Sequence record: OR513085.1
Length of the DNA stretch: 64,000 bases
Strand: one strand, 5' to 3'
In this document: positions 9 to 48,521 of the stretch, piece by piece
How positions within the stretch are numbered: position 1 is the first letter of the stretch
Layout of the letters: each line of letters begins with the position of its first letter
Notes under the pieces: generated by a model
Told to the model about the DNA's origin: nothing
Databases searched by the model: none
What the model saw: the letters and a program-made list of their open reading frames with translations, nothing else
Position numbers and translations under genes: made by a program

Positions 9-998
9 ATGGATTATATGAAAAATGTTTGGCACTTAGATAAAGAATTGCATAAACATTTAAAAGAACATCCAGAACTTAAAGCTTCTTTCAAAGACCC
101 GGATTGGCGAGCTGAAGTTAAGCAAATAGATGTTAATTTGGATTACGTACTTTATATGGACACTGACTCGATGTACGTTACGTTTGAGGAATTATTTGAA
201 ACTATTGGCTATGACCCGCAACATGACGGTTCATATGCCAGGTTTATTATGGAAATGAATTCGTTCAGACTACGTGGATTGTTTAAGGAAAAAATTGGTG
301 AACGTGTAGCCGAAAGACATGGTGAAAACTTTTTAGTTTTCGATTTGGAATCGGTATCTGAAACTACATGTTTCCTGGCAAAGAAAAAATATGTGATGTC
401 GTACAAAATGGAAGACGAAAAAATTTATGACGACCCACTTAAACATATAAAAGGTAAAGGTGTTGAGCTAGTTCAGCAAAAATTAGCAGTGCCAATCAAA
501 GACATGATTCGTTTCATGGTAGTTCAAATGTTCAAAGGTAAAATTACGAATGTTAACTACAAAACTTACATGAGGTATATGTTCCAGCAATTCTCGCAAC
601 TACCTTTCCAGCAAAGATGTACTTTAGGTTCAGCAAACACGTATGATAAATATGTGCTTAACGATACTACAAGATGTGAATTTGCTTCTGGCGCAGGTGC
701 AGATGTTAAAGGTATGGCATATTACAACTTTGATGTTAATGCAAAAGGACTTAAAACAAAATATGAAGTTCTTAAAGGCGGTAAGTTAGTTTGGTATTAT
801 GCAAAACCTACGCAAGAGCATCCTGATAGATTTTCATACGCATTCCATGTTGACGAATATCCTGAGGAACTTGCTCCTGAAATGGACATCGAAACTCAAT
901 TTATGAAACTTGTAGCAGGACCTGTTGGTAGAATTGTAGCATGTGCCGGAATTGATGTAGGAAATCCTCTGGCATCTCAAATGATGATGGAATTATAA
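9..998 (+). CDS. gp43: Family B DNA polymerase, C-terminal part (probably continues upstream of the window)
   Basis: Motif C YMDTDSMYV, KKKY and KGKGVELVQ thumb motifs; frame is open to the window edge. Confidence 0.92.
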   Translation: MDYMKNVWHLDKELHKHLKEHPELKASFKDPDWRAEVKQIDVNLDYVLYMDTDSMYVTFEELFETIGYDPQHDGSYARFIMEMNSFRLRGLFKEKIGERVAERHGENFLVFDLESVSETTCFLAKKKYVMSYKMEDEKIYDDPLKHIKGKGVELVQQKLAVPIKDMIRFMVVQMFKGKITNVNYKTYMRYMFQQFSQLPFQQRCTLGSANTYDKYVLNDTTRCEFASGAGADVKGMAYYNFDVNAKGLKTKYEVLKGGKLVWYYAKPTQEHPDRFSYAFHVDEYPEELAPEMDIETQFMKLVAGPVGRIVACAGIDVGNPLASQMMMEL

Positions 999-24877: not shown

Positions 24878-25789
24878 ATGGCAAAAACATTTGAACTTAT
24901 AAAAGACGGTAGTATAAAACATGCAGGCCGTACACTTTACAAAATAAAAGCTTTAGTAGACATTCCAAATCATGGCGTAAATGCCGGAGATATTGGTGGA
25001 TGGGTAGAATCTGAAAATAACCTACAAAGCGATGAAGCATGGATTGGCGATGCAGCCATGGTTTATGGTGACGCTGTAGTTTCAGAAAAGGCTTTAGTTA
25101 CTGAATTTGCACAAGTTTCAGGATTTGCTGAAATTAAAGGCTTTGCAAAAGTACAAGGTAATGCCAAAATTTCAGACAAAGCCAGAATTTGGGGAAGCTG
25201 TACTGTTGAAGACAACGTTACGATAGGAGGCTTTACATTCATTGCAGACTTTGCAATAGTACGAGGATTTGCTAAAATTGCAGGAGAAATTCAAATTATT
25301 GAAAACGCTAGAATTTGGGGTCATGTAAAAATTTATGCTAACGCTATAATTAGAGGTCATGCACAAATTTATGGTGATGCTGCCATTTATGGAGGCACTA
25401 TTTCAGGTAATACGGTAGTTTGTGACTATGCAAAAATAGGTTCTCATGTTATGCTAAGCTATGGAATTTTTAAAGGTAGGGCTGTAGTTACTACACCTAG
25501 TGACTACGCAGCAATTGCTAACATAGGCTCAAGGAATGGAACTACTATAGCATATAAAACTAACGTACTTGCTCAAAGACCATCACAAATTGAAATTATT
25601 TGCGGATGTTTCACAGGTGACTTACAACAATTCTACAATATTGTACGTAGACAATATGGCGGGCATAACGTAGGTATTGCGGGTAGACGTTACTACAAAG
25701 AATACATGGCAGCTATACAACTTATTGAAGCCAAATTCTCTGTGAAAGTAAAGCGTAAAGGTAGATTTTTGGCATGGTTAAGATCATGA
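24878..25789 (+). CDS. Left-handed beta-helix (hexapeptide repeat) phage protein
   Basis: GRTLYKIKAL..GDIGGWVESENNL followed by many AxVxGxA hexapeptide repeats. Confidence 0.8.
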   Translation: MAKTFELIKDGSIKHAGRTLYKIKALVDIPNHGVNAGDIGGWVESENNLQSDEAWIGDAAMVYGDAVVSEKALVTEFAQVSGFAEIKGFAKVQGNAKISDKARIWGSCTVEDNVTIGGFTFIADFAIVRGFAKIAGEIQIIENARIWGHVKIYANAIIRGHAQIYGDAAIYGGTISGNTVVCDYAKIGSHVMLSYGIFKGRAVVTTPSDYAAIANIGSRNGTTIAYKTNVLAQRPSQIEIICGCFTGDLQQFYNIVRRQYGGHNVGIAGRRYYKEYMAAIQLIEAKFSVKVKRKGRFLAWLRS

Positions 25790-27686: not shown

Positions 27687-28970
27687 ATGACAACAAACGT
27701 ACAAAACTTAGGAACTATTTTCGCAGATAAATTCAATGAAGTAATGGCTAACGAAGCTAATGTAACAAAAGCTTACCAAGTCATAGCTAAATTTTGTATA
27801 AGCCAAGCTAACCAGGCAGATGAAGATGACTCAGAAACTATAGCTTTCTGGAATGAAAAAGAAACTTATTGTATGGACAAAGCTAAATCAGGAGTTGCTA
27901 AAGTTGCAACGACAATCGAACGCTTCCAAAAGAACACTTCAAACTTCAAAACTGAATTTAAGTTTTCAAGTAAGGAGGAAAGAACAATTTACCAAAGATT
28001 CGTAGAAAACAAGGAAAACACTACAAACAAGTTAATGTACTACACAGTAACTGATGAAAACTTCAATTACAGAACTGAGTCTGGCATTTACTTCCACAAC
28101 ATGGTTAATGCAATTGTTGAGAGATTTAACGAAATTTCAAACTACGAATTTGCTATAGTTGACAAGGAGTTCTTAGTTAACAACGAATTTGCTATTGATA
28201 CTGAACTTGGTAGAAGATATGCATTCTATGTAGATACTGATGACTTCCATGCATCTACAAAAGAACAAGTAGCATCAGTTTATTCAAAAGTACATCCAGG
28301 ATGCAGAGTATTCGTTTCTTACGAAGCATTAGCCGAACATATCTCAACTTACATCAGATACAAAGCTATCTACATTCTAAGCGACCAGGCATTCAATGCT
28401 TTACGTTACTTAGTAGATTCAATTGAGGTAGTTAAATGCCCAAACCTTGATCTTTCAGAATTTGGTGATGATAACTTGGTAAGCCATGACTTTCAGGCAT
28501 ACGCAGAATTCCTAAGCTTCAGAAAATTCAATACTGTACATTACACAAATTCAGAAGTTGTAGAAGTAGAAGTTGAACAAAAACAAGAGTTCTTCTCTGA
28601 CTTTATCAGATTCAAATCTACAGGAAAGGCAGAGAAAAAGTCAGTAACAAAGGACATTACTTACGACCTAGTAACAATTTCTAAACCGGCATCAAAGGTA
28701 CCAGTTTACCGATTTGCTAAAAGAATGAAGCAAAATCCAGGTACTAGACAAATCCTGATTCAAAACATCCTATTGACATTGAACGAAAACTTACAATTGG
28801 AAAACATTGAAGTTATGCCAGAAGATTTTACGTTAAGCAACAACAAAGATTACGTTATGCATAGCCAACTTAACTCCATCATTACAATTGCTAACAGAGA
28901 TGCAGACAAATTCCATGCAGGAACGTTAGAAGCATTAACAAACATTTTGCAAATACAAATTAGAAAGTAG
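27687..28970 (+). CDS. Hypothetical early protein
   Basis: 427-aa ORF with its own promoter and terminator. Confidence 0.75.
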   Translation: MTTNVQNLGTIFADKFNEVMANEANVTKAYQVIAKFCISQANQADEDDSETIAFWNEKETYCMDKAKSGVAKVATTIERFQKNTSNFKTEFKFSSKEERTIYQRFVENKENTTNKLMYYTVTDENFNYRTESGIYFHNMVNAIVERFNEISNYEFAIVDKEFLVNNEFAIDTELGRRYAFYVDTDDFHASTKEQVASVYSKVHPGCRVFVSYEALAEHISTYIRYKAIYILSDQAFNALRYLVDSIEVVKCPNLDLSEFGDDNLVSHDFQAYAEFLSFRKFNTVHYTNSEVVEVEVEQKQEFFSDFIRFKSTGKAEKKSVTKDITYDLVTISKPASKVPVYRFAKRMKQNPGTRQILIQNILLTLNENLQLENIEVMPEDFTLSNNKDYVMHSQLNSIITIANRDADKFHAGTLEALTNILQIQIRK

Positions 28971-28999: not shown

Positions 29000-29032
29000 C
29001 CTGGGTAGTCTTTAAGATTGCCCAGGATTTTT
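29000..29032 (+). terminator. Intrinsic terminator
   Basis: CCTGGGTAGTC / GATTGCCCAGG + T run. Confidence 0.65.
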
Positions 29033-29051: not shown

Positions 29052-29522
29052 ATGGAAACTATAACAGTCATAACAAGCCCAGTTCACAGAAGTATTTATG
29101 AAGTCAACATAGGCGTAAATAGCTACGACATTACTTATGTACAACAAAGCGGAACGTCAATACATAGAAACAAAGCTACAAATGATTTGTTGGAACTAAA
29201 TACTAACGATGAAGCTAAGCTAGAATTAGTTTGTGCGTACTTTAATGCCCTACGTAACTGGCAATTAGCATACATTAACGAAGACTATCTTACGTTTAAC
29301 ATTGGCAACTTATTAATTCCTGATACACTTAAGGAAAAGTTTATTGGCGAAGTACGTAAGCATACGCTAACTTCAATGTTTGGTACATTACAACTTATGG
29401 ATTCTATGAACATCAAAATTGAAGTTCCTCAATCAGAAGTTGTAGGCAGACCTTTGCTAAAATATGCTAAAGCTATCAACCACTACCACAACTACTGCAA
29501 ACAACAACTTAACAATGGATAA
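29052..29522 (+). CDS. Hypothetical protein
   Basis: 156-aa ORF. Confidence 0.65.
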   Translation: METITVITSPVHRSIYEVNIGVNSYDITYVQQSGTSIHRNKATNDLLELNTNDEAKLELVCAYFNALRNWQLAYINEDYLTFNIGNLLIPDTLKEKFIGEVRKHTLTSMFGTLQLMDSMNIKIEVPQSEVVGRPLLKYAKAINHYHNYCKQQLNNG

Positions 29523-30120
29523 ACAAAAACATACACCAAAGCTAATAGCTATTTTTGCTATAACTACTAACAACGTTATTGGTGACGTTAAGGATGGTCA
29601 GCATATCATGCCATGGCCTAGAATTAGCCAGGACATGAAAAGATTCAAGGCGCTAACTGATGGTCATGTTGTAGTAATGGGACGTAACACTTGGGATAGC
29701 CTAGGCTCCTATGCGCCATTACCAAATCGAACAAACATAATTGTTTCGCGTACGTTACGTTACACTGACGTTATGCATCACCCAAATACTTACGTTTTTG
29801 ATAGTATTGATGATGCTATAGCTTATGCTAAGGAAATTTGTGAGACTAATTTGCCTGAACTTGGTAGAAATGTTTACATCATGGGCGGCGGCCAAATATA
29901 CAGGCAGACTAAGGGCATTGTAGATCAGATTGAAGTTACTAATATTATAGCATGTCCTAATGTAGGTCCTGACACTGTAAAATTCAATTCATTCGAGGCA
30001 TACAAAGGATTTAAGCGTACAGAAACATCACCAGTATACAATATGACTGACAAAAGTACTGGTAAAAAGTTGGATTTTTATTTCTATACGGAGGTACGCG
30101 ATACCCAAAAATTGCCTTAA
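29515..30120 (+). CDS. folA: Dihydrofolate reductase
   Basis: AITTNNVIG, MPWPRISQDMKRFKALT, VVMGRNTWDSL, PLPNRTNIIVSR, IMGGGQIY. Confidence 0.95.
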   Translation: MDKQKHTPKLIAIFAITTNNVIGDVKDGQHIMPWPRISQDMKRFKALTDGHVVVMGRNTWDSLGSYAPLPNRTNIIVSRTLRYTDVMHHPNTYVFDSIDDAIAYAKEICETNLPELGRNVYIMGGGQIYRQTKGIVDQIEVTNIIACPNVGPDTVKFNSFEAYKGFKRTETSPVYNMTDKSTGKKLDFYFYTEVRDTQKLP

Positions 30121-30178
30121 ATTTTTGTACTTTAATATAACTTAACAAAATAATTTAAATACACAGATAAACACTACA

Positions 30179-30841
30179 ATGGCAAAAATCTTAAAAGAAA
30201 CTACAACAATTGACTTAGGCATAAAATATGCTGGCAAAGTATCAAAATCAATCACAGATACTTTCGCTGACCGACTTAACAACATTACAATCAATGCAAT
30301 CGTAACACAGTTTGCACATTCGCCAGAAGGTGCAAAAATTATGTTCATGGGTGTTGGCAAAAATTCATACCTTTCGCATAAACTTGCAGCTACTTGTCAG
30401 TCATTGAATATCAATGCAAACTACTTTGATTCTGTACATGCTATGCATGGTGACTTAGGCGCTTTACGTTCAGGTGATATTGTAATTGCGTTTTCAAAAT
30501 CTGGCAAAACTGCCGAGTTGCTTCACACTTTAGCTTACCTTAAAAAGCACAAAAAACATTTTGGTGTAACTACTGTAGGTGTTTTTGCATCAGATGATGA
30601 TTATAATTCTGAGGCGGTTACTTCAATGGAAATAACAAAAAACACAGACTACCAAATTTTGCTTAAATCATGCCAAGAATTGGACGACAACAAAACGGTA
30701 CCGACAACTTCAGCATTGGTTATGCAGGCAGTAGGCGACGTTATAGCATTACAAATTGCATCTAATAACGGCCTTACTACAGAACAATTTGGATTAACAC
30801 ACCCAGGCGGCTTAATTGGTGCAACACATAACAAAGACTAA
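30179..30841 (+). CDS. kdsD: Arabinose-5-phosphate isomerase (KdsD/GutQ SIS domain, no CBS)
   Basis: MGVGKN..KLAAT, AMHGDLG, SKSGKTAEL, VPTTS, GDVIA, FGLTHPGGLIG. Confidence 0.85.
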   Translation: MAKILKETTTIDLGIKYAGKVSKSITDTFADRLNNITINAIVTQFAHSPEGAKIMFMGVGKNSYLSHKLAATCQSLNINANYFDSVHAMHGDLGALRSGDIVIAFSKSGKTAELLHTLAYLKKHKKHFGVTTVGVFASDDDYNSEAVTSMEITKNTDYQILLKSCQELDDNKTVPTTSALVMQAVGDVIALQIASNNGLTTEQFGLTHPGGLIGATHNKD

Positions 30842-31087
30842 TGTGGCCTATAAAAGAAAACCTTAATTGCAAAAGTTAGGCATCATTTTGCACAAACCGA
30901 TCATTATGATGCCGAACTTGCTAAGTTATGCCTAGCACATATTAAACCACTTTGGGATAAAGAGCTTTGGCAAGAATGTAAAGATGAAGTCTACAAATTT
31001 TATGAAGGCTTAGACATCTCGATAGAAAAGGACATGATCCTTGCAAACCTAAATAAACGAATAAGATTAAAAACTACACATGACTAA
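30841..31087 (+). pseudogene. Frameshifted ORF of about 81 aa (MWPIKEN / LIAKVRHHF...)
   Basis: ATG overlaps the kdsD stop; one extra base near 30861-65; the shifted frame ends with an ATGACTAA overlap on the next gene. Confidence 0.5.
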
Positions 31088-31328
31088 ACAATACACCGTA
31101 GCGTATATGTCATTCTTTGACAATGACTTAAGACTTGCAGTAGTCGAAGCTACATCAGAACTTGAAGCTGCAAAGAAATTTTTGTATGACATAACTGATG
31201 ACAAATACAAACAAGGAGAACTTGATGAACAGGCTAGCGAAAACTATCCAAAAGACATGGAAGCTTTGAAAGAATATCATTTTAATGCTGACGCAGTTAT
31301 TAACGTTATCGAAATTCCGACTAAATAG
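31080..31328 (+). CDS. Hypothetical protein
   Basis: 82-aa ORF. Confidence 0.65.
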   Translation: MTKQYTVAYMSFFDNDLRLAVVEATSELEAAKKFLYDITDDKYKQGELDEQASENYPKDMEALKEYHFNADAVINVIEIPTK

Positions 31329-31393
31329 TCTAACAAATGCCGGTATTACTGCCGGCATTTGTGTATTTTAGCATTAAATTTAAAAATCTACAC

Positions 31394-33154
31394 ATGACAA
31401 ATCAAAAATTTGAAAATCTTATAATTGTAGCATCTGGTGCAGGTACTAGAATGGCTGAATATACAATGAACAACACAATTCCAAAGCTTCTTGTTAGTCT
31501 TGGAAACGAAACAATCTGGTCGTCTATGCTTAAAAACATTGACCGAGTTGCCGAATATGTTTTTGTTATTGCCAATAGTAAGCATATTCCAATGTTGCAA
31601 GAGGTTGCAAAACTTACATATCCTGAACAGGCTGAAAACATAATTTATGTTGATTACGATGAACAAGATGGTACAGCAAACACGATTGCTAAAACAGTTT
31701 CTGATAGAATGATTGATGGTACTACTTTGATAGTTTGGTCTGACATTCTTGAAGCTTCTACAGAATCTTTGTTACCGTTAACCAGTTCGTTATCTAAGCT
31801 TAAGGAATATGATGGCGATAATTTACAAGTATGTGTTATAGCAGACAGACAGCCAAGACACCGATTTAAAATTGATGGTTCTGTTATAGAAGAAGTTGCT
31901 GATGCTTCAGGTAACATTGTAGGCGCTTATGCTACTAACGAAATTGCAAAATTTGGAGCATGGTCAGGTTCTCATGGAAGAGGTTTAAGAGATTTTAAAT
32001 TTACTGGTGAAGTTCTAAGGCATAACCAGGACTTTATTTCGTTAGTCAAAGTTATGCATGAACGCGATGATTTACGTTCAATCAAAACTTTCTATGGTGA
32101 CTTTATTGATCTTGGTGATTCTGCAAAATACCAGGCATACATGGCTTCCAAGGAAATAAAAACTCGCTATTTCAACAAGCTAGAAATTGGTACTGACAGA
32201 GTTACTAAAACTGCCACTAATGCTAAAGGCAGAGCAGTTATGGCTAATGAGGCAAGTTTTTATATGTTCATGGAAAAGTCCGGATTTGACCAAATGTTTG
32301 CAGGAGTTATTGGAATGATTGGCGATAGTATTGAAGATGATATGTCTACTTTAGTACTTGAAAAGCTTGACAAAACAGTACACCAGCATATTACAGAACA
32401 TGTAGCTAATGTAAAGAATGTAGATAAACATGCATATACTGCAAGATCGTATGCTGCAAGGATAGCTTACAAAAACTTCAAGGAGTTTATGAAGCCTTTG
32501 CATACAGCAAATCCTGATCATTTTTTACCACAGTCGGATTTTTCAGATGATGTATTAACTAATGCTGCATGGAAGGAATACATTGAAGTAACTAGGTCAA
32601 GGTACGAATCAATCAAAGGATTGCTTTCAGCATCTGACATTATCAGGTTTAATGGCGAAGTTGTGCCAAGCTTTGACTATGTAATGGCTAAGCTAGAAGA
32701 CTACTTACGAAATTCAAACGTACTAAATTTAGGGCTTATCCATGGTGATACTAACACCGCAAATGTTATGATGGATTCCAAAGGCGCTATGAAGCTTATT
32801 GACCCTAGAGGAGTTTTTGGAGATATGCAATATGCAGGTGATACTAATTATGACCTAGCAAAATTCCTTTACGGCTTAACTGGCTACACTGACTTTAATG
32901 ATTCTACAGACTTCAAAGTTAAAAAGGATGGCACTTCGTTATATTGCGAATTATTCAACAAATTGCCATCACCTTGGTATGTTTGCCAGGATAACGAAGG
33001 TAACGACGACATTAATGCGGTTATCTTAGTAGGTCTTATTTGGCTTAAGCTTCCTGCTTACATTATCAACAATCCACTAAAATCGTTAGTAGCTTACTAC
33101 AAAGGCTTGACGTTGCTAAACAAAGCATTGAACGAATACGAATTTACAAGATAA
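31394..33154 (+). CDS. Sugar-nucleotidyltransferase fused to APH/choline-kinase-like phosphotransferase
   Basis: IIVASGAGTRM..PKLLVSLG; EQDGTA; C-terminal IHGDTNTANV, KLIDPRGVFG, YDLAK. Confidence 0.85.
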   Translation: MTNQKFENLIIVASGAGTRMAEYTMNNTIPKLLVSLGNETIWSSMLKNIDRVAEYVFVIANSKHIPMLQEVAKLTYPEQAENIIYVDYDEQDGTANTIAKTVSDRMIDGTTLIVWSDILEASTESLLPLTSSLSKLKEYDGDNLQVCVIADRQPRHRFKIDGSVIEEVADASGNIVGAYATNEIAKFGAWSGSHGRGLRDFKFTGEVLRHNQDFISLVKVMHERDDLRSIKTFYGDFIDLGDSAKYQAYMASKEIKTRYFNKLEIGTDRVTKTATNAKGRAVMANEASFYMFMEKSGFDQMFAGVIGMIGDSIEDDMSTLVLEKLDKTVHQHITEHVANVKNVDKHAYTARSYAARIAYKNFKEFMKPLHTANPDHFLPQSDFSDDVLTNAAWKEYIEVTRSRYESIKGLLSASDIIRFNGEVVPSFDYVMAKLEDYLRNSNVLNLGLIHGDTNTANVMMDSKGAMKLIDPRGVFGDMQYAGDTNYDLAKFLYGLTGYTDFNDSTDFKVKKDGTSLYCELFNKLPSPWYVCQDNEGNDDINAVILVGLIWLKLPAYIINNPLKSLVAYYKGLTLLNKALNEYEFTR

Positions 33155-33230: not shown

Positions 33231-36200
33231 ATGGCAAAATTTACAAAACTTGCTGGAGAAGTTGCTAAGCTTTACGACGGTAAAGTTACTGGCAGCATTA
33301 TCAAATTTGACAGTGAGGACGACTTATTTAAAGCAGCTGATGAAATTGCAGATCAGTTCGCATTTACAATGGACCAGGATAAACTGACCATCGAGTTCCT
33401 TAACGAAAACATTGACATAAAATTCCTTAAGCAATTTGCTTCTGCAATGGGAGTTTCTCAATTCACTAACGAATCAGTTGACAAACTTACGAAGCAAATA
33501 GGAATTAGCCTTAACGAGGCTGAAGTTGATACCGTTACTACGTTACTAAACAAAGTAGAAAGTCCTGAATATCCTGACGTTGCTAAAGTTGCGGCTGACC
33601 CTATGCAACAAATTGCTGATACTATTACAAACTCTGCAGCTACAGGTGCTACGTTAGATATTGTAGACGGTGAAAATTCTGCTAAACAAATTGTTATCAG
33701 AACTGATGATAAACTTATTGCAGCTACACCAACTGACATCGTAGCAATCAACGAATCAGCTTACGTACACTATGGAATGCATCAGCTTAACGAAAATGAA
33801 TACAATGCACTTAAAGCTTTGGAAGATGTTAATGCTAGACGTAGATTCCTTACAAGCATGGGTATCATGGACTTAGATGCCGATTCAATTTCAAAGAACT
33901 TGGAGTTGCTTAAACCTCTTCATCCTGACATGGATGCTAATGGGTTGCTTCCGCTAAATGAAGCTAACGTAACAATTATTAACGTAAGCAATGCTTTTGC
34001 TAACGAAGCCAGTAACGCTCTAGCTAATGTAGCTAATCTTTATGCTAAGTTTGTTAATGAAAACAATTCATGGACAGTTAAGTCTTACGATGCTGCTGAT
34101 GTTAAAGCTACTTTAGTTTCTGCAGGAATTCCTGCAAACGAAATTTTTATGAATGAGTCTAAAGACATGGACATCTACAACTTACAATCTAAAGTTGCAT
34201 TATTCTGTAAAAAGTCAGGACTTTCAGGAGCCGATGTACAAAAAGCTTTACTACTTGTTAACCTAGAAGCTAAAGAAGCTAAACCTAATTTTAGCAAATA
34301 CGTAAACATAAAGGACTCAATGCTAAACGAATCTGCCGATGCACAGGATGCTGAGGAAATGTTTGAACGTAAAAACAAAGCATATGCTAAAATGATTAGC
34401 AAAGACGGCCTAGCTGCTGAGCTTACTGAATTCCTAGCTTCTTTTGGAGAAAATGCTAAAGTTCCTGAGGATGGTTTAGTTGGTGAGTATGGTGAACTTT
34501 CTGCAGACTTGCAAGAAGGAATCAACAAATTCATGGAAGAGCGTGGTTACTTTGCTAATGAAAGTACTAATTGGACGCTTGATAAAAAATCAAAAGGTGA
34601 ATATAACGAATGGCATATTACTGGCGATGCACTAAACAAAGTAAAATCACGTGATGAAATTTTTGATGTATTACCTGAACTTAAAGGAATCTATAAAACA
34701 CTAATTGATTCTAAAAATGGACTAAAGTACAGCGACCGTGTTAAAGTTGGCAGCATTACAGTTACTGGTGATGATATGGGCGATATTTTAAATTTTCTTA
34801 AAGGTAACGGTTCACTAAATGAATCTGTTGATGCTAACGAGGAAATTGAAAGTGTATACAAATTTGAATCTATAAAAGACATTGAGGTTGCTGCTGCAGC
34901 TAAAGGTTATGTTTGCAAAGGACATTCAGGACAATCCGAATCTTCTGACAAGTATAAATTTGATATTCTAGCTAAAGGTGGCAAAAAATGTGCAATGGGT
35001 ATTTATGACAAAACTAAAAAAATTGCAATACTGGATGTTAACGATGAACATAAAGGTACCGCTTTACTAGAAGCTAAAATGATTAATGAAAGTTTCACTA
35101 ATGAATCTGCAGGCATTGAAAACTTATTCGCATCTATGGGAGCTACATTCAACAAAGAGTTACGTACAGATGGCACTTACAAATACCAAGTTACTGGCTT
35201 AGTAGGTTATGCTAACGAGGCTACTGAAGTACCAAACACTGCCGACCTCATCGCATTTGAAATTCTTAAATTGTACGGAAACTTCAAAGAAGCTACAAGG
35301 CTATCACGTTCAGTAGTTAAACAAGCGTTACGTAATGTTATTGATACATTGAAAGTTGATGACTCTTGGTTAACTGACGAATCTAAATTTATTTCGCTTT
35401 TTGAAGCTATTGATACTATGAGAGTAGACTTTGGCCCAATTGACGAATCTTCAAATTTGCCAACTAAAACAAGCGAATTAAAAATTAACGCATATGTAGC
35501 ATTTAAAAATAATGGTGCAAGAATATTTGGTAAAATTTCAGGCATAAAAGGTGACGAAGTTTCAGTAAAACTAACAAACGGCAAACAAATGCTAGTTGAT
35601 GCTAAAGATGTAATTTTAGGTCTTGAAAATTACGTTAATGAATCAATACCTCAGCAAGAAGCTAAGATTGCCGGAACTAAAGCTAAGATTGCTGAAATTA
35701 AATCAGAGGCTAAGGCTGCTTCGGCTAACGCATCTTCCAAAATTTCCACTGAAAAGGCTAAGTTAGTAAATGCCAGAGCTACTTTGAAAAACCTTAAAAA
35801 GTCAAAGTCGTTAAATGAGTCTAAAGCGCCTCAAGGAGTTGGAGGAAATGTTTATGTAGTACCAAACTCGTCTTTCCAAAATCCTTGGCTAACACATAAG
35901 CTTGAAACTTCACTAGGTATGCGAGGATATCAATTTGCTAACCAATTCAAGTCTGACATCGTAAACGCCGACATTATGGTTGACTATTATGTTGCAAAAG
36001 ACGACAAAGTTAGTGAAGTTTGTATGGACATGGAAGGTACTTCAAAACCTCAAAAGACTGAAATTATAGCTACACCAGTTTCAATTTACATTAACGAAAA
36101 CAATGTACTTTGTTTCAATGAAAATCCAATTCCTACAGAAATTGCAGAAAACGGGCAGATTGGTTCAGTAGCACAATTCAAGGAATATGCTAAATACATT

Positions 36201-36365
36201 CTGAGTGGTGGCATTCCTGGTGCAGATTCTGCATGCGAAGAGGGCCCAGTTACTCAGGAAGATATTGCAAAAATTGACAGTATTTGTGATGCTTGCGGTG
36301 AAAACTATGGTGCTATGATGGGTAAATTTGATGATTATCTTAGCCAGAAAGCTACTGTTAACTAA
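33231..36365 (+). CDS. 1044-aa late protein with about 18 xNE|S/A/N sites; probable internal head polyprotein
   Basis: Late promoter; motif density matches the protease scaffold. Confidence 0.7.
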   Translation: MAKFTKLAGEVAKLYDGKVTGSIIKFDSEDDLFKAADEIADQFAFTMDQDKLTIEFLNENIDIKFLKQFASAMGVSQFTNESVDKLTKQIGISLNEAEVDTVTTLLNKVESPEYPDVAKVAADPMQQIADTITNSAATGATLDIVDGENSAKQIVIRTDDKLIAATPTDIVAINESAYVHYGMHQLNENEYNALKALEDVNARRRFLTSMGIMDLDADSISKNLELLKPLHPDMDANGLLPLNEANVTIINVSNAFANEASNALANVANLYAKFVNENNSWTVKSYDAADVKATLVSAGIPANEIFMNESKDMDIYNLQSKVALFCKKSGLSGADVQKALLLVNLEAKEAKPNFSKYVNIKDSMLNESADAQDAEEMFERKNKAYAKMISKDGLAAELTEFLASFGENAKVPEDGLVGEYGELSADLQEGINKFMEERGYFANESTNWTLDKKSKGEYNEWHITGDALNKVKSRDEIFDVLPELKGIYKTLIDSKNGLKYSDRVKVGSITVTGDDMGDILNFLKGNGSLNESVDANEEIESVYKFESIKDIEVAAAAKGYVCKGHSGQSESSDKYKFDILAKGGKKCAMGIYDKTKKIAILDVNDEHKGTALLEAKMINESFTNESAGIENLFASMGATFNKELRTDGTYKYQVTGLVGYANEATEVPNTADLIAFEILKLYGNFKEATRLSRSVVKQALRNVIDTLKVDDSWLTDESKFISLFEAIDTMRVDFGPIDESSNLPTKTSELKINAYVAFKNNGARIFGKISGIKGDEVSVKLTNGKQMLVDAKDVILGLENYVNESIPQQEAKIAGTKAKIAEIKSEAKAASANASSKISTEKAKLVNARATLKNLKKSKSLNESKAPQGVGGNVYVVPNSSFQNPWLTHKLETSLGMRGYQFANQFKSDIVNADIMVDYYVAKDDKVSEVCMDMEGTSKPQKTEIIATPVSIYINENNVLCFNENPIPTEIAENGQIGSVAQFKEYAKYILSGGIPGADSACEEGPVTQEDIAKIDSICDACGENYGAMMGKFDDYLSQKATVN

Positions 36366-41417: not shown

Positions 41418-44400
41418 ATGCTATACAAATACACAACACTCCCGGCAGATACTTCAGCGTTACCAGTAGGCGCTTTGATTCTTACAAAGAGTGGTGACGG
41501 TTACATTCTTGACAACAATAAAGTTGCAGTACCATTCAAAGGTAACGTACTTACTCCTGCATTAATTAACAGCTGGAATGACGCTGCTACTAAAGCTCAC
41601 GTACATTCTAACAAAGATACACTGGACCTTATTAGCTTGCTTTCAATTCAAAAATGGGATGAAGCTTATTCACTAAGACATACGCATTCTAACCTTGCAA
41701 CGTTAGAAACTATAACGCCTGCAAAAATTGCTGAGTGGAATAGTGCAATGAAATTTATAAAAACATTGTCTACTGAGGACTTAGATACTGTAACAGTTAA
41801 TGGAATCTACACACAGCCATCTAATGCTAATGCAACAACCGCAAATCACTATCCTATTGGTTATGCAGGAACTATAACAGTGCTAGGTAATGGTGGCAAT
41901 CACATTGTTCAGGAATATGTTAGACTTGCATCAGGTGCTACAGGTAACACTAAATATCGCAGATACTATTATGTTAGTTCAGGATGGTCTAATTGGCAAA
42001 AATCTTTAGATGATCGTGACATTACTCAGGCAATGATTGATTCTTGGAATCTTGCAGTGTCTTGGGGTAACCATGCTAATGCAGGTTATATGACTCAAAC
42101 GACTTCGGATGCTAGGTATTTAAGACTAATTGGTGGAACGTTAACTGGTGATGTTGCTGTAACTGGAGGCAAAACATTTACATTCACTGCTGCCGATGGC
42201 AAAACTTATGAAGTTAATGGCTCAGGAACTAAACATACTTCAGGTGCTAATGTGTTTTCATCAAATTTTGTAGATTCTAACACTTGGGGAATTACTCACG
42301 GAACTCAGCAAATTTTGACTAAAGACATAGCCAACAATGTTGTAAAAATTGGTAATGACACTTCACCTGCACAATTAAGAATAAAGTCTGCAGTATCTCC
42401 AAATCCAACTTCTACTGTACTTACAAACCCATCCGGTGACGTTTCAATAGTTCCAGCTTTACCGCTATTTACTAACTACCTTGAGCCTAGCTTATTAGCA
42501 AATGCTGATAGCGTAACAACAAAAGGAATTGAAGTTAACTACATTGACGCATCTACACTAAACAAACCGACAACATTAGCTAATGGAACGTTAATGACAC
42601 TAAACATTAACAACTCAGGAGGCTCGCAATTAGCAATATCAACTTCAACAGACCCAGCAGTTTATTTTAGAACTAGAACAAATTCAAATTTTGGAGGATG
42701 GACTAGGTTAGCTACAACTAACGATCTTACTGCATTAGGCCAGGACTACATTAGCAAAACTACTAACGACTTACCTGCTAACTCGGCTTGGTACGTTAAG
42801 AAAGGAACATCTGGAATTGGTGTAGTTGATACTAACTTTATAGGATTATTTGACGCTACTACAAAGGCTTATGTTACTGCAGGCGTACTAAAAATTGTTA
42901 ACGGTGGTATACAAACTGATGCAGCTTCAGTTATTGGAGGAACTACTACATTCAATGCTAACGCTACGTTCAACTCAGCTAACGTTACGTTTGCTAATGG
43001 CGCTAACAGCTCAACGTTAGCTATGGCTGGCACTAGATTAGCTATAGCATCAGGTAATGCCGGCAAAACTGGAAACATAATTGTTGATGGTGATTCGCCA
43101 ATTATTGCAAGACCTGAAACTGTAGTTAATTCTGACACTGTATTAGCAGGATTACCTGTAGGTACTCATGGTGCAGGTACATCCATTGGCGGTGTTAACG
43201 CATCCTTTATAACTTTTGGTAGCCCAGTTACTGGAACTAAAACAAACTTGATAGGTTCTACTACAGGCTTCCTTAAATTTAGATCATCATCAGGCGCTAC
43301 ATTTTCAGATTGGAAATCGTTAGTTGCTTTTGAAGACTTAACGTTAGCTACTACAGATACTTCTGTTAGCTTAACATTCAATGGCATTACAAAGACTGCA
43401 CCATTAACTACCGGAACGTTAACAAACGTAACGTACACCAACAATTGGACATTGCCATTCGGTACAACTAAAGGTTATATTGACATTGAAATGCCTACAT
43501 CTACATCAGGTGACATTATACTTACGTTAGTAGGTTATTGGGGCAATGAAAGACAATCAGGTTCAGTTAAATATCAAATTGGATTTGGTTCAAACACTAC
43601 ACAAATATACGATCAATATGCTAACATAGTTTCCGTTACTGCAGGCCAAGTTTTACTAGATAGTTATGCAGTTAACTTATCCGCAGCAATCGTGTTAGTT
43701 AATGCTAAACCTTGTTTACGTATTTGGTGCATGCGTGACGGAATTTCGCAAACTAACACAGTTAGAGCATTCATGCAAATTAAAACTAGACAAGGTACTG
43801 CATTTACTTCGTTGAACGATGTTAAGCCTCTAGCTTTCGTAGCCGAGCCTAACATTCCAACATTTATGGACCTCGATCAAGCACCTAAGTCAGTTTCATT
43901 TAACCAAATTGCAGTTAGATCATCTGCGCAAAACGATGATAATGCTGCAATTAAGCTTAAAACTGCTAGAATTTCAACATCACCAGCAAATGCAAATGGC
44001 ATTCGTGTAGTAGGTACATCAAATACTGCAGCAGGTTATCTTTATTTAGGTTCAGGTAACAACAGACTGGGTGTTGACGACGGTACTGCAAATTCACCTT
44101 TGCTTTATAATGCATCACCAGTAGTTACAAGAGACTATGCTATAGCAAATGGTTTTATATTTTCAGAAGGCAATGCTATAGGTACTATAAATGGAGTTTC
44201 TGGAGAAATTGGTCTACCTGCTAACTCATTTAAGCCAACAAAATCAGGATTCTACCGAGCTAATGGTGAAAATAACTGGGGTGCATTGTCAATGGCGATA
44301 GCACATCCTGCTAGAAGTGATGGAGGCTTTATGGCTGGTATAGCTTTTGATTATTCAGGAGCCAATGCATACTTAACAGGTAATGATTCTACAGGAGCCA

Positions 44401-47400
44401 AACTTCCTAACAAGAAAATATTAACTTCTGCGGATATCGACATATCTAAGTATTGGGAGAAATGGACAGATGGTACTAACGTAGGATTTAACAATGCTAC
44501 AGCATATTACTTCCTAGGTGCAGATGCTAATACTGCTCAGAAAGTTTATACAGGAGGTCTACTTACATCAGGCTCATTTGGTGATGGTAGTAAAATTCCA
44601 ACATTTGGAATTTACTCTAAAGGCGATATTGCTTTTGATGGAGTATTAAACAAGCTTACAGGAGAACTTAATTTACAAAAAGCTGGAGTTAACCGAATTA
44701 GAACTAGCGGGCCATCTACAGTAATATCAGCAGAAGCGGTCAATACAACTTCAGGCGTTACGGTTAGGCCTCTTGGTGATGCTAATACTGCTAACCAAAC
44801 AATGTTTGCTAAGGATATTGTACGTTACACTACAAAAGCTAGACAATTCAGTGACGTTGTAAACATTGCAAAATATGAAAACGTTGCAGCAGCTTCATTA
44901 ACACATAATGGTCCTGCAACAATAAAAATTATGTTCCCTCATAGTTTGAACACTGTAATGTGGAGCATTAAGCTTACTGTAGTTTCATATACTGGCGCTA
45001 ACAACACCAACATCAACCAGTTGCCAATGGAACTTACAATTTCTGGTTATGGTACGATGCCTGCAACGCCATCAACTAACACAAGTGCTTCAGTAGTTAA
45101 TGAATTTCCATCGTTTACTGGAGTTAAAATTGGATTAGATGATGCTACTGGCTTTAAAACGTTAATGCTTAACTTTAGTGGTACTTTAGCATATCCTAAA
45201 GTTATAATCGACCAGATAATTTATCATCACTCCGGATTAGCTAACAATACTGATATTGATGGTGCATATTCAATCACTCAGGTAGCCGATGAAACTGGAT
45301 TTACTAGCCAAACTGAAATTTTGCTAGCGCAGTTCAAAAATTATCTTGACGTGTCAAAGGCAAAAACTGCATTCCCTACTAACATGGCAAACGCAATTGA
45401 TTCGGTTGGTACTTCTCCGGATTTAGGCGCATTAGCTAACGGAAATTATTCAGGAGCAATTAGCTTAGCATCTACGAACAAACCATTTGCATCTACTGGA
45501 GGTTTGCTTTCATTTGGAGGAGGCGCACAAACTACTAGAATACTAGGTGCTCGTGATGGTTCGGATAACTTATGGTTCCAATCAGGTCCTGGTTCTGTTG
45601 CATGGAGACAAATAGCCTCAAGAGATTACATAACTACGCAATTAACAAACTACATTCCAACGTCCCAAAAAGGCGTGGCTAATGGCGTGGCTACATTAGA
45701 TGCTAATGGTTTTGTACCATCGGCACAGTTACCTAGTTATGTGGATGATGTTTTAGAATTTGCATCGTTATCAGCATTCCCGCCTACTGGAGAATCTGGT
45801 AAAATTTATATTGCTATTGACACTAACCAACAATATAGATGGTCAGGAACTACTTACGTTTTGATTAGTTCTGGTGCAGTTCAGTCAGTAAATGGTAAAA
45901 CTGGAGTCGTTGTCATTAATAAAACCGATGTAGGCTTAGACAACGTAGATAATACTGCAGATAATGCAAAGAATGTACTTAGTGCAACTAAATGGTCTAC
46001 ACCAAGAACATTTACATTAAATGGTGATATTGCGGCTACTGGTTCAGTCGATGGTTCAAGTAACGTAACGTTCACGACTACTTTGCCTAACATTGTAACT
46101 GCAGGAACTTATAAAATTACTACGGTTAACGCTAAAGGCCAAGTTACTGGAGGTTCAAACCCAACTACTTTGGCAGGTTTTGGAATTACTGATGCTATGT
46201 CAACGTCGCATCCGGCTAACGTAATTACTTCAACTGACATTGCTAACTGGAATGCTCAAGTTGCAGTAGGTAATTTTAGATCTTATGGTTTAGGAACATA
46301 CAATGCACTGACTATATCTGATTTTAACACGTTACAGACGCAACTTGAAAATGTAACTAGATTTTATGGTTCAGTTAATGCTGCAGTTACTAATGGTCCT
46401 ACTGGAATTGATTATCCTGCAGGTGTTTTTAATAGCATAAGTAATGCAGTACAATCTGTATTAGTTTTTGGAGGCCACGGTACTAACAATGGTTTAGCAT
46501 TCAGAAATAAAACTGGTACTAATACATGGGGTAACTGGGTATATGCTTGGACAGACAAACATTTTAGTCAGACAAACATAAACAATTGGAATACTGCATA
46601 TTCTTGGGGTAACCACGCATCTGCCGGTTATCTAAAAGCGGCAGATATTGCAGGACTTGTTAAAAAGACAGGTGACACTATGTCAGGCATGCTTACAATA
46701 AGCTCATCGTCACAGCCATTGGCATTACGAGGAACTTCTGCAAGTACTAACTACACTACTTATGTTAAACATGATGGTAGTGGTAACATTGGATTTATTG
46801 GTTCAAATGGAGGTGGTGCTATTGGTGACGGCGGTAATGGCGACAGATTTGTTGTTCGTGGAACTGCCGGACTTGATCTTTATTCAGATGTAGGAAATGT
46901 TACTGCAAATGGCGGTGGTATTTGGACAACTAACCATTTTGAAGCTACTGACTTAACTAATTTCTTTGAAGCATATAACAATAGCATATCAGGCGGAACT
47001 ATGACGCCTACGCAATTGCAGCTTACAAGAACAGGGTCTGCACCAATAAACATTGCAATACCTACGTTCAACCAAAATACTACTGGTAATGCAGGTACTG
47101 CAACTAAATTACAAACTGCAAGGACTATTAAAATTGGTGAACAGTCCGGACCTTTTGATGGAACTTTAAACTTAACATTTGGCCACAATGAAATGAAAGT
47201 TACGATGTGCGGTGTTAAGACTTACGGCGAATCTTGGAACTCGGTAGTAGTGCTAGATACTAGAAATGCCAGTCCATTACCATCAACAGATTTACAATCA
47301 GCAGTTACATTTGACTTTAAGCAGTCATCTGCAATTGGATTAAATGGCATTCCTGGAGTTTCTACATATGCAAGTGCTATTACTATGGCACCGTTCGTTA

Positions 47401-48521
47401 ACGACTCTGGTAATAATAATTCTGCATTTACGCTAGCTCAATCTAATGGTGTTTTAGCATTTAAAAATTATGCTAACGGTGCATGGGGTTCATGGATTAA
47501 ATTGTTAACATCTGCAGATATTTCTACAGCGTCAATTAACAACTGGAACCAGGCATATTCTTGGGGTAACCACGCATCTGCTGGATATATGTCGAAATCT
47601 ACTATAATGGGTACTGCCAACTTTAATTCATTGGCAGGCACTGGAGCTAACGGAATTTATCGTTCAGACCAAGACCCTACTGTAGCTAATGGTGTTAAGT
47701 ACAAATATTCGCCAATGTTGCATATGGGCGCTTCTGATACAATGACCCAAATGTCTATAGCTTATGCTACTGGCGAAATGTCATTCAGGGGAGGCTATAA
47801 CAACACTTGGCAAGATTGGCGTACTGCTTGGGATAACGTTAACTTACCTCAGCCAGTAACAAGAAACACTGCACAAACTATTACTGCAGATAAAACTCAT
47901 ACCGAGAATATCTTGCTTAATGGTAACAACATGATTAAGTTTTTTGGTACTGCATCAACCAGAGTAATGATACTATCTGCTGATAGAATTACTGGTTGGA
48001 CAGGTATCTCCGATGACCAAGATCGTAAAGTTGCAGGGATAGACTATGGTTCAGGTAACTATACTCTAGGTGAAATGATCTATGTTAGGAAGACTAACAA
48101 TAGCACCGGTAATGTAGGTATCAGATCAACTCCGCATGCAACGTATCCAGTTTACTTAAATGGTGATACTGCATGTACAGGTAACTTCATTGGTGTAGGA
48201 TTCTATGAGTCTTCACGTAGAGAATTGAAAACTAACATCAAAGCTTTTGAAAAATCAGGGCTTGACTTAGTTAACGAACTTGACATTGTAACGTTTGACC
48301 GTAAGGACAACGAGGAAATTAAAGATAAAATCGGAGTTATCATTGATGACACTCCATCCGAATTTGCTTCAGTTTCAGGTGATGAGGTTGACTTATACAA
48401 AACAACCTTCATTCAAGCCAAGGCTATTCAGGAACTTTCTGCTACTGTCGAAAAACAATCTGCTGAAATTGAAGAGCTAAAGAAAATGGTAAATATATTA
48501 CTAAAAGGTACGAATGGATAA
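41418..48521 (+). CDS. 2367-aa long tail fibre with pyocin-knob-like modules and C-terminal intramolecular chaperone (S74-like)
   Basis: G/T/N-rich; KGVANGVATLD..SVNGKTG motif; WSNW/WQDW knob ends; ESSRRELKTNI..AIQEL + coiled coil. Confidence 0.88.
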   Translation: MLYKYTTLPADTSALPVGALILTKSGDGYILDNNKVAVPFKGNVLTPALINSWNDAATKAHVHSNKDTLDLISLLSIQKWDEAYSLRHTHSNLATLETITPAKIAEWNSAMKFIKTLSTEDLDTVTVNGIYTQPSNANATTANHYPIGYAGTITVLGNGGNHIVQEYVRLASGATGNTKYRRYYYVSSGWSNWQKSLDDRDITQAMIDSWNLAVSWGNHANAGYMTQTTSDARYLRLIGGTLTGDVAVTGGKTFTFTAADGKTYEVNGSGTKHTSGANVFSSNFVDSNTWGITHGTQQILTKDIANNVVKIGNDTSPAQLRIKSAVSPNPTSTVLTNPSGDVSIVPALPLFTNYLEPSLLANADSVTTKGIEVNYIDASTLNKPTTLANGTLMTLNINNSGGSQLAISTSTDPAVYFRTRTNSNFGGWTRLATTNDLTALGQDYISKTTNDLPANSAWYVKKGTSGIGVVDTNFIGLFDATTKAYVTAGVLKIVNGGIQTDAASVIGGTTTFNANATFNSANVTFANGANSSTLAMAGTRLAIASGNAGKTGNIIVDGDSPIIARPETVVNSDTVLAGLPVGTHGAGTSIGGVNASFITFGSPVTGTKTNLIGSTTGFLKFRSSSGATFSDWKSLVAFEDLTLATTDTSVSLTFNGITKTAPLTTGTLTNVTYTNNWTLPFGTTKGYIDIEMPTSTSGDIILTLVGYWGNERQSGSVKYQIGFGSNTTQIYDQYANIVSVTAGQVLLDSYAVNLSAAIVLVNAKPCLRIWCMRDGISQTNTVRAFMQIKTRQGTAFTSLNDVKPLAFVAEPNIPTFMDLDQAPKSVSFNQIAVRSSAQNDDNAAIKLKTARISTSPANANGIRVVGTSNTAAGYLYLGSGNNRLGVDDGTANSPLLYNASPVVTRDYAIANGFIFSEGNAIGTINGVSGEIGLPANSFKPTKSGFYRANGENNWGALSMAIAHPARSDGGFMAGIAFDYSGANAYLTGNDSTGAKLPNKKILTSADIDISKYWEKWTDGTNVGFNNATAYYFLGADANTAQKVYTGGLLTSGSFGDGSKIPTFGIYSKGDIAFDGVLNKLTGELNLQKAGVNRIRTSGPSTVISAEAVNTTSGVTVRPLGDANTANQTMFAKDIVRYTTKARQFSDVVNIAKYENVAAASLTHNGPATIKIMFPHSLNTVMWSIKLTVVSYTGANNTNINQLPMELTISGYGTMPATPSTNTSASVVNEFPSFTGVKIGLDDATGFKTLMLNFSGTLAYPKVIIDQIIYHHSGLANNTDIDGAYSITQVADETGFTSQTEILLAQFKNYLDVSKAKTAFPTNMANAIDSVGTSPDLGALANGNYSGAISLASTNKPFASTGGLLSFGGGAQTTRILGARDGSDNLWFQSGPGSVAWRQIASRDYITTQLTNYIPTSQKGVANGVATLDANGFVPSAQLPSYVDDVLEFASLSAFPPTGESGKIYIAIDTNQQYRWSGTTYVLISSGAVQSVNGKTGVVVINKTDVGLDNVDNTADNAKNVLSATKWSTPRTFTLNGDIAATGSVDGSSNVTFTTTLPNIVTAGTYKITTVNAKGQVTGGSNPTTLAGFGITDAMSTSHPANVITSTDIANWNAQVAVGNFRSYGLGTYNALTISDFNTLQTQLENVTRFYGSVNAAVTNGPTGIDYPAGVFNSISNAVQSVLVFGGHGTNNGLAFRNKTGTNTWGNWVYAWTDKHFSQTNINNWNTAYSWGNHASAGYLKAADIAGLVKKTGDTMSGMLTISSSSQPLALRGTSASTNYTTYVKHDGSGNIGFIGSNGGGAIGDGGNGDRFVVRGTAGLDLYSDVGNVTANGGGIWTTNHFEATDLTNFFEAYNNSISGGTMTPTQLQLTRTGSAPINIAIPTFNQNTTGNAGTATKLQTARTIKIGEQSGPFDGTLNLTFGHNEMKVTMCGVKTYGESWNSVVVLDTRNASPLPSTDLQSAVTFDFKQSSAIGLNGIPGVSTYASAITMAPFVNDSGNNNSAFTLAQSNGVLAFKNYANGAWGSWIKLLTSADISTASINNWNQAYSWGNHASAGYMSKSTIMGTANFNSLAGTGANGIYRSDQDPTVANGVKYKYSPMLHMGASDTMTQMSIAYATGEMSFRGGYNNTWQDWRTAWDNVNLPQPVTRNTAQTITADKTHTENILLNGNNMIKFFGTASTRVMILSADRITGWTGISDDQDRKVAGIDYGSGNYTLGEMIYVRKTNNSTGNVGIRSTPHATYPVYLNGDTACTGNFIGVGFYESSRRELKTNIKAFEKSGLDLVNELDIVTFDRKDNEEIKDKIGVIIDDTPSEFASVSGDEVDLYKTTFIQAKAIQELSATVEKQSAEIEELKKMVNILLKGTNG

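Follow-up and report, generated by a model that had tools for sequence, protein, structure and literature searches.

An isomerase and a nucleotidyltransferase-kinase fusion as the putative arabinose-donor half of a cytosine hypermodification system in Chryseobacterium phage MA9V-2

Why would a jumbo phage encode, within a few kilobases, an arabinose-5-phosphate isomerase and a protein that joins a nucleotidyltransferase to a kinase? The question is raised by a stretch of 64,000 nucleotides (the window, to which positions refer unless marked as record positions) that is 100% identical to record positions 154540-218539, the final 64 kb, of the genome of Chryseobacterium phage MA9V-2 (OR513085.1), a 218,539-bp jumbo myovirus isolated on the plant pathogen Chryseobacterium indologenes MA9. 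This identity and the isolation host bear out the Bacteroidota host suggested by a first-pass annotation, which had also placed a dihydrofolate reductase (DHFR), a CBS-less isomerase, and a nucleotidyltransferase-kinase fusion at 29515-33154 and inferred, by analogy with phage RB69, that a nucleoside diphosphate (NDP)-pentose donor is made for the modification of DNA. The three genes are indeed found at these positions, on the + strand, which carries nearly all genes of the window:

30179..30841, + strand: MA9V2_233, 220 aa, predicted CBS-less SIS-domain arabinose-5-phosphate isomerase (API)
31394..33154, + strand: MA9V2_235, 586 aa, annotated as "GlmU," an AfhE-type nucleotidyltransferase-kinase fusion
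29515..30120, + strand: MA9V2_232, canonical DHFR, whose longest open reading frame (ORF) starts at 29464

After searching the window together with the remaining MA9V-2 genome, taken from the public record (269 annotated coding sequences), we put at roughly two in three the probability that the isomerase and the fusion constitute the UDP-arabinose donor half of a cytosine hypermodification system for MA9V-2 DNA, the product of which is probably arabinosyl-hydroxymethylcytosine. Sequence comparison supports the analogy with RB69 as far as the donor is concerned, the fusion being a full-length homologue of the bifunctional enzyme of RB69, Acinetobacter phage DLP3, and Escherichia coli phage HY126. 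The Afh pathway of these phages is the arabinosyl-5-hydroxycytosine (5hoC) system (PMC13326640, PMC6024577): in the DNA of RB69 and DLP3, 5hoC bearing one to three arabinoses stands in for cytosine (PMC13326640, 2026), and work on HY126 summarised in the same paper assigns to the AfhE fusion the activities of an arabinose-5-phosphate kinase and a UDP-arabinose pyrophosphorylase, with arabinose-5-phosphate provided by a SIS protein and the 5-phosphate taken off by the HAD phosphatase AfhF (PMC13326640).

The longest ORF of the fusion gene (31337-33154) encodes 605 aa and contains Pfam domains NTP_transferase (aa 29-177) and APH/choline-kinase-like (aa 448-511), and it matches phrog_4098 over its full length (E = 4.4e-70, aa 27-600); the start at 31394 is backed by annotation and alignment, and the hairpin at 31333..31362 also argues for it. 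A hidden Markov model (HMM) of the family matches MA9V2_235 at 3.1e-93, and tblastn recovers full-length relatives (95-98% coverage) in 229 phage records, most of them RB69-like Straboviridae of enterobacteria, Acinetobacter, and Vibrio, together with the jumbo phages Sphingomonas PAU and Tenacibaculum PTm1. Identity to AfhE-type homologues is about 27-31% (29% over full length to PAU and PTm1), and an alignment of the MA9V-2 protein with those of PAU, PTm1, JK45, and Serratia phage 4S has 60 invariant columns; the residues invariant among these five distant homologues include GxxxR and PK in the nucleotidyltransferase, the HGDxNxxN loop of the kinase, and IDPRG. A sequence search of the PDB with the fusion protein returned no match. 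MA9V2_235 is thus predicted to be an arabinose-5-phosphate 1-kinase and UDP-arabinose pyrophosphorylase, and the evidence hints that the nucleotide of the donor is UDP. Fusion homologues also lie within ORFs of 850-930 aa in four loci (L036-L039, giant-virus contigs from metagenome-assembled genomes [MAGs] plus one other contig), three of which come from MAGs labelled Nucleocytoviricota, which suggests that the pentose-donor enzyme is also present in giant viruses.

The isomerase matches Pfam SIS (2.3e-9) and, over its SIS portion only, the NCBIfam models KpsF/GutQ (3.3e-24) and KdsD (1.1e-21). Because the alignment to the 328-position KdsD model is limited to positions 50-199, MA9V2_233 has no CBS pair. 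It also matches phrog_5670, "arabinose 5-phosphate isomerase," at 1.5e-36; its closest solved structures are the single-domain phosphosugar isomerases 5uqi (5e-22) and 3etn, along with E. coli KdsD (2xhz), and it retains the motifs GVGK, HGDLG, SxSGxT, PTTS, and HPGG. With 31% identity to RB69 gp55 and 40% to PAU gp212, MA9V2_233 would convert ribulose-5-phosphate to arabinose-5-phosphate, as the counterpart of RB69 gp55 and DLP3 gp83.

Gene neighbourhoods point in the same direction. Among 31 loci examined (27 further viral loci were retrieved with a profile of the fusion protein; two pairs duplicate PAU and PTm1), 27 have an API homologue no more than 10 kb from the fusion homologue, so the grouping of the two genes is not due to chance, and the order isomerase, small ORF, fusion is identical in MA9V-2, RB69, JK45, and 4S. 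In 18 loci the distance from the fusion homologue to a ThyA homologue is likewise at most 10 kb, and all 18 of these AfhE-linked ThyA homologues carry L143E, D169N, and N177D, the published signature of 5-hydroxy-dCMP synthase. Immediately before the isomerase gene of L013 and L014, the two closest of the newly retrieved relatives, lies that of a T4-gp1-like deoxynucleoside monophosphate (dNMP) kinase. Given these API, ThyA, and dNMP kinase neighbours across loci, the AfhE family adjoins nucleotide-modification genes and not polysaccharide genes.

This pattern bears on a different use of the same donor, in which the NDP-pentose would serve virion-protein glycosylation or a host surface polysaccharide, with the ThyA homologue described below separately making plain or hexosylated 5-hydroxymethylcytosine (hmC). 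The sugar genes of MA9V-2 do lie 67 kb from the cluster containing that ThyA homologue, among structural and unassigned genes and near the hexapeptide-repeat acyltransferase-like MA9V2_224 (24878-25789), and polysaccharide-modifying clusters occur in jumbo phages. However, AfhE genes are found almost only beside nucleotide-modification genes, the HAD partner of the MA9V-2 pathway is located in the ThyA/kinase cluster, and Pfam scans showed no polysaccharide-type glycosyltransferase, flippase, or polymerase, all of which makes a destination other than DNA improbable.

Where, then, are the remaining steps encoded? The first-pass annotation had noted that the window holds no glycosyltransferase or dCMP-modifying gene, which is borne out in that all candidates lie outside it, and had proposed searching the rest of the genome for a ThyA-like cytosine-modifying enzyme, a dNMP kinase, and a glycosyltransferase. 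The search found MA9V2_146 for the first, the adjoining MA9V2_145 for the second, and MA9V2_112 and MA9V2_115 as candidates for the third. A candidate for the phosphatase lies in the same cluster as MA9V2_145 and MA9V2_146:

Record 112738-114108, outside the window: MA9V2_142, KdsC-type HAD sugar-phosphate phosphatase

At the N terminus of MA9V2_142 is a disordered tail rich in His and Cys, followed by a HAD core in which DxD is intact and, at the C terminus, by a conserved alpha/beta domain. Its HAD core structurally matches KdsC/YrbI sugar-phosphate phosphatases (E = 1e-7), and the protein is 35% identical (9e-17) to PAU gp216, whose gene directly follows that of the PAU AfhE homologue; the order of the trio of HAD, kinase, and ThyA-homologue genes is kept in metagenomic relatives. 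When the C-terminal domain was checked as a possible glycosyltransferase, the model reached moderate confidence, and matches to known structures were confined to the HAD domain. MA9V2_142 is analogous, not orthologous, to AfhF, and it may be the arabinose-bisphosphate phosphatase.

The resemblance of both the isomerase and the phosphatase to enzymes of Kdo synthesis (the lipopolysaccharide core) raises the possibility that they boost or hijack this host pathway, the fusion being an unrelated sugar-activating enzyme; the best family names are indeed KdsD/KpsF and KdsC, and the GenBank annotation agrees. We regard this as very improbable: MA9V2_233 falls within the API family of phages and, unlike KdsD, has no CBS pair, the phosphatase gene sits inside a nucleotide-metabolism cluster, Kdo synthesis has no use for a kinase domain, and neither KdsA nor KdsB occurs among the 269 annotated coding sequences or in Pfam scans (which left some small ORFs unscanned). 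Both alternatives named in the first-pass annotation, virion glycosylation and Kdo supply, are thereby weakened.

Returning to hypermodification of cytosine, the genes assigned to base synthesis and to the supply of dTMP are as follows:

Record 116922-118265, outside the window: MA9V2_146, 447 aa, divergent ThyA homologue (49 bits)
Upstream of MA9V2_146 and overlapping its start, outside the window: MA9V2_145, P-loop nucleotide kinase
Outside the window: MA9V2_094, canonical thymidylate synthase (350 bits), with D169 and N177 retained

The closest solved relatives of MA9V2_146 are the CMP hydroxymethylase MilA, which is the best, and an RB69-gp48-like entry. Its active site has the catalytic C146, L143D, a retained D169, and N177D, and its MRSND segment recurs unchanged in T4 gp42. 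From C146, L143D, and N177D, the enzyme should be cytosine specific with a non-methyl product and, because D169 is retained, published residue rules predict a hydroxymethylase and not a hydroxylase; that is, the test for the D169N of 5-hydroxy-dCMP synthases is negative. The D169 signature is common to the full-length family of MA9V2_146 (38-45% identity), which shares a C-terminal extension of about 170 aa, and to all 120 nearest homologues. MA9V2_145 matches the RB69 gp45 family HMM (6.9e-9) and phrog_761 (2.5e-16).

It is here that the analogy with RB69 divides: the donor agrees, whereas the predicted target base is hmC in place of the 5hoC of RB69. Were the base 5hoC after all, as in RB69, DLP3, and PAU, MA9V-2 would be another arabinosyl-5hoC phage with the same donor, an outcome for which one can cite the 5hoC signature in all 18 other AfhE-adjacent ThyA homologues and in PAU gp182, as well as the empirical nature of the D169N rule. 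We nevertheless consider it unlikely, since D169 is kept in MA9V2_146 and in its 120 nearest homologues, with MRSND as in T4 gp42, since the best solved relative is MilA, and since tblastn of the whole MA9V-2 genome found no second cytosine-type ThyA homologue.

Several other genes of nucleotide metabolism or modification accompany these. MA9V2_025 has a dCMP deaminase domain, MA9V2_080 is a CYTH protein, and MA9V2_030 (L001:24793-26202), directly after the clamp loader and with a full-length homologue in the sister phage MA9V-1 only, contains two DUF1599 "nucleotide modification associated domain 1" (NMAD1) repeats (E = 2.9e-38) and, after them, roughly 300 aa of unassigned sequence. MA9V2_019 (L001:14415-15035) matches Pfam GmrSD_N (DUF262), the N-terminal domain of type IV restriction enzymes directed against DNA with glycosylated hmC, here encoded by the phage itself.

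For the final transfer, the candidates are two proteins:

Record 91486-92622, outside the window: MA9V2_112, beta-glucosyltransferase (BGT)-like candidate
Record 93557-94888, outside the window: MA9V2_115, BGT-like candidate

Their counterparts in PAU are gp180 for MA9V2_112 and gp179 for MA9V2_115 (phmmer, 6e-6 and 9e-10, respectively), and PAU gp179-181 immediately precede gp182, the 5hoC-type ThyA homologue. A profile of the four proteins (MA9V2_112, MA9V2_115, and PAU gp179 and gp180), in which SE..Y.K..L.PNR..E is invariant, matches the profile of the T4 BGT (GT63) family with 88% probability (E = 2.8e-6) over 80 columns in the C-terminal domain only. The match spans the nucleotide-sugar-binding region, with the invariant Y, R, and E aligned to BGT Y261, R269, and E272, which we take to line the UDP site; it scores 34.6-51.4, against 20.6 for the best unrelated control, and a reverse scan of 86 phage proteins returned MA9V2_112 as the top match. 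A PDB sequence search with the BGT-like family profile gave no match, nor did a Pfam scan of 48 hypothetical proteins (233-585 aa) reveal any glycosyltransferase family. Likewise, tblastn, phmmer, family HMMs, and hhalign detected no MA9V-2 match to the transferases of RB69, JK45, 4S, T4, and L048, to AfhF, to the PTm1 histidine phosphatase, to a U32 protein, or to the dCTPase. On this evidence MA9V2_112 and MA9V2_115 may be DNA pentosyltransferases.

Assembled, the proposed pathway would run as follows. MA9V2_233 would divert ribulose-5-phosphate to arabinose-5-phosphate, which the kinase domain of MA9V2_235 would convert to arabinose-1,5-bisphosphate; a HAD phosphatase, for which MA9V2_142 is the candidate, would strip the 5-phosphate, and the nucleotidyltransferase domain of MA9V2_235 would yield NDP-arabinose, probably UDP-arabinose. 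In parallel, MA9V2_146 would convert dCMP to a 5-substituted dCMP, predicted to be 5-hydroxymethyl-dCMP, which MA9V2_145 would phosphorylate, leading to its incorporation during replication. After replication, MA9V2_112 and/or MA9V2_115 would move the pentose onto the hydroxyl in DNA, and the modified genome would be protected against CRISPR and the restriction enzymes of the host. MA9V2_094 and DHFR would sustain the folate and dTMP supply, the latter enzyme regenerating tetrahydrofolate for the former and supporting the hydroxymethylase.

That DNA is the target is further supported by the related phage PAU, whose DNA is reported to be extensively modified (PMC7824862), and by the presence of MA9V2_030 with its NMAD1 repeats. 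A number of observations nonetheless pull the other way and are reflected in the probability given above. The papers on MA9V-1 and MA9V-2 are silent on any modification of the DNA and on resistance to restriction, and the genes assigned to the module are spread over at least three regions of the genome and do not form one cluster. Identity to the characterised AfhE enzymes is only about 27%, a level at which sugar and nucleotide specificity could differ, and the call of hydroxymethyl versus hydroxy hangs on one diagnostic residue rule from one paper. Orthologues of AfhF (the small HAD phosphatase of the RB69 gp51 type, encoded directly downstream of AfhE in the Afh pathway) and of the RB69 gp46:47 and gp3 arabinosyltransferases are missing from MA9V-2 by tblastn, phmmer, family HMMs, and hhalign, and the glycosyltransferase assignment consists of the 80-column profile-profile match, with no Pfam and no PDB sequence match. 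A homologue of the gp56-type dCTPase of T4 and RB69, which excludes canonical dCTP, is also missing (RB69 gp28 as the query; tblastn and phmmer); the CYTH protein MA9V2_080 and the NMAD1 protein MA9V2_030 are possible substitutes for it.

A more specific proposal, which we advance only tentatively, is that MA9V-like Bacteroidota jumbo phages put an arabinose-donor pathway onto a T4-type hmC base by means of BGT-like enzymes, giving 5-(arabinosyloxymethyl)cytosine, and that the DHFR-fold family of MA9V2_230 (see below) is a new recurrent component of pentose-donor loci. This base was the first to be proposed for RB69 and was later revised to arabinosyl-5hoC; in the literature searched, we found no phage confirmed to carry it, and the NAR paper on the Afh pathway (PMC13326640) names neither Chryseobacterium, PAU, nor Tenacibaculum. 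Should our main reading of MA9V-2 be correct, the Afh arabinose-donor module would reach beyond the Straboviridae of Proteobacteria to jumbo phages of Bacteroidota and would be portable between two cytosine chemistries, hydroxy and hydroxymethyl. It would also supply new enzyme candidates, namely a bisphosphate phosphatase of the KdsC type, pentosyltransferases resembling BGT, and an accessory protein with a DHFR fold. There is also a practical side, in that MA9V-1 and MA9V-2 are under development as biocontrol agents against root rot of Panax notoginseng, and a hypermodified genome would bear on host range, resistance to restriction and CRISPR, behaviour in sequencing and cloning, and regulatory characterisation.

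How far does the module extend to its neighbours in the window? DHFR, which the first-pass annotation had listed alongside the sugar genes, is certainly present (Pfam DHFR_1, 3.8e-30; phrog_316, 2.8e-38), but its link to the sugar genes is loose, consisting of adjacency and of folate supply for ThyA-type enzymes; in one relative (L040), DHFR lies beside a cluster of a ThyA homologue and a helicase. Upstream of it lies a second protein of related fold:

27687..28970, + strand: MA9V2_230, 427 aa, member of a rare family with a DHFR-like central domain

This family has 14 representatives among 1.84 billion proteins. In L013 and L014 a homologue separates API from AfhE, and another, in L042, is 3 kb from a SIS gene and a kinase-like gene of 589 aa. 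The AlphaFold2 model of MA9V2_230 (pLDDT 82.6) retrieves DHFR alone among the top 50 Foldseek matches in the PDB (E = 2e-9; TM 0.64-0.72, normalised to the target), and BFVD agrees; sequence comparison gave no confirmation for a BFVD match, H9NC88 (272 aa), as PAU gp211, upstream of the PAU API. We had tried MA9V2_230 as a glycosyltransferase and rejected it in that role (no family match and a DHFR-like model), and we keep it as a candidate accessory enzyme (a nucleotide or sugar reductase) or cofactor-binding protein. MA9V2_237 (433 aa), which flanks the module, was likewise rejected as a glycosyltransferase for want of a family match; among sequenced phages, orthologues of MA9V2_230 and MA9V2_237 occur in MA9V-1 only. 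The distant MA9V2_230 relative in the metagenomic contig L042 (L042:1766-6664) is clustered with dehydroquinate-synthase-like, EPSP-synthase-like, SIS isomerase, and 589-aa kinase-like genes, followed by a NUDIX gene and a methyltransferase, and this cluster may be a different donor pathway, for a sugar derivative.

Two kinds of small element also lie within or beside the module:

31080..31328, + strand: MA9V2_234, 82-aa ORF between the isomerase and fusion genes, conserved in position only
31333..31362, + strand: hairpin with a 13-bp perfect stem and T-rich tail, between MA9V2_234 and the fusion gene
29000-29026: hairpin with a 12-bp perfect stem and T-rich tail

MA9V2_234 has no family match in Pfam, NCBIfam, and PHROG scans, and small ORFs fill the same position in RB69 (gp54), JK45, PAU (gp213 and gp214), and L013. 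Termination, attenuation, and RNA stabilisation are all conceivable functions of the hairpin at 31333..31362; with that at 29000-29026 it flanks the block from MA9V2_231 to MA9V2_234, and the two may mark transcript boundaries, hairpin-type sites in the region being no more numerous than in shuffled sequence. Downstream of the fusion, MA9V2_236 (window 33231-36365; 1044 aa) was rejected as a member of the module: it has no family match and about ten NES repeats, variants of which (LNES, INES, VNES, etc.) are spread along its length in a pattern that resembles the repeated prohead-protease cleavage sites of an internal head or ejection polyprotein, and it is probably a processed internal virion protein.

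Elsewhere in this part of the genome, which is 87% identical over the region to that of the sister phage MA9V-1, the family B DNA polymerase is annotated as two pieces, MA9V2_192 and MA9V2_196 (record 149314-155537; window 9-998), the window starting within the second. The gap between them, about 3.4 kb, contains two genes without assignment and a TnpB-family RNA-guided endonuclease, MA9V2_195, and the polymerase gene looks as if it had been split by a mobile element. MA9V2_224, annotated as LpxD, belongs to the YdcK family, has hexapeptide repeats (a left-handed beta-helix), and matches phrog_5070 and phrog_7964, phage families of unknown function; both sugar acylation and a structural role were considered for it. 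MA9V2_243 (window 41418-48521, 2367 aa), with a faint match to Peptidase_S74 (intramolecular chaperone), is probably a giant tail fibre.

The MA9V-2 system can be set against three known ones, as follows.

(i) The glucosyl-hmC system of T4 (gp42, gp1, and alpha- and beta-glucosyltransferase) is approached by MA9V2_146 in its signature (L143D, D169, N177D, and MRSND), by the candidate transferases as possible remote relatives of BGT, and by the order of events proposed for MA9V-2, with base synthesis before replication and glycosylation after it. T4, in contrast, takes UDP-glucose from the host and has no donor pathway, whereas MA9V-2 encodes one for arabinose, and no homologue of the T4 gp56 dCTPase was found in MA9V-2.

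(ii) PAU and PTm1, jumbo myoviruses, are the nearest cultured relatives that bear the module. In PAU, API is followed by two small ORFs, AfhE, and a KdsC-type HAD homologous to MA9V2_142; this phage encodes homologues of MA9V2_115 and MA9V2_112 in gp179 and gp180, and its DNA is reported to be heavily modified. Unlike MA9V2_146, however, PAU gp182 and PTm1 ORF167 carry the 5hoC (D169N) signature; PAU gp25, tried as a long ThyA homologue, was rejected on its canonical ThyA signature. PTm1 further differs in a histidine phosphatase and in a split gp46:47-type transferase beside AfhE, and PAU differs in a dTDP-rhamnose pathway and an annotated glycosyltransferase. The former comprises gp185-187 (L052:37823-40302; dTDP-glucose dehydratase, 3,5-epimerase, and glucose-1-phosphate thymidylyltransferase) beside the 5hoC-type ThyA homologue, and the latter is gp171 (L052:24463-25500), adjoining a thymidylate kinase; the cytosines of PAU may thus receive sugars of several kinds.

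(iii) The Afh system differs from that of MA9V-2 in several respects. MA9V2_146 retains D169 and adds a C-terminal domain of about 170 aa; the MA9V-2 phosphatase is a KdsC-type HAD whose C-terminal domain is conserved in every examined member of its family and whose His/Cys-rich N-terminal tail is shared with one relative; transferases of the gp46:47 and gp3 types and a gp56-type dCTPase are lacking, and the genes are dispersed; and the host belongs to the Bacteroidota, the phage being a 218-kb jumbo phage outside the Straboviridae. What the two share is the succession of CBS-less API, small ORF, and bifunctional fusion, with matching orientation; a gp45-type kinase next to a ThyA homologue in which residue 143 is acidic and N177D is present; and an encoded DHFR and canonical ThyA. 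Judged by sequence, the system as a whole thus departs from the Afh pathway in its D169N, AfhF, and gp46:47/gp3 features, while its donor half belongs to that pathway by architecture.

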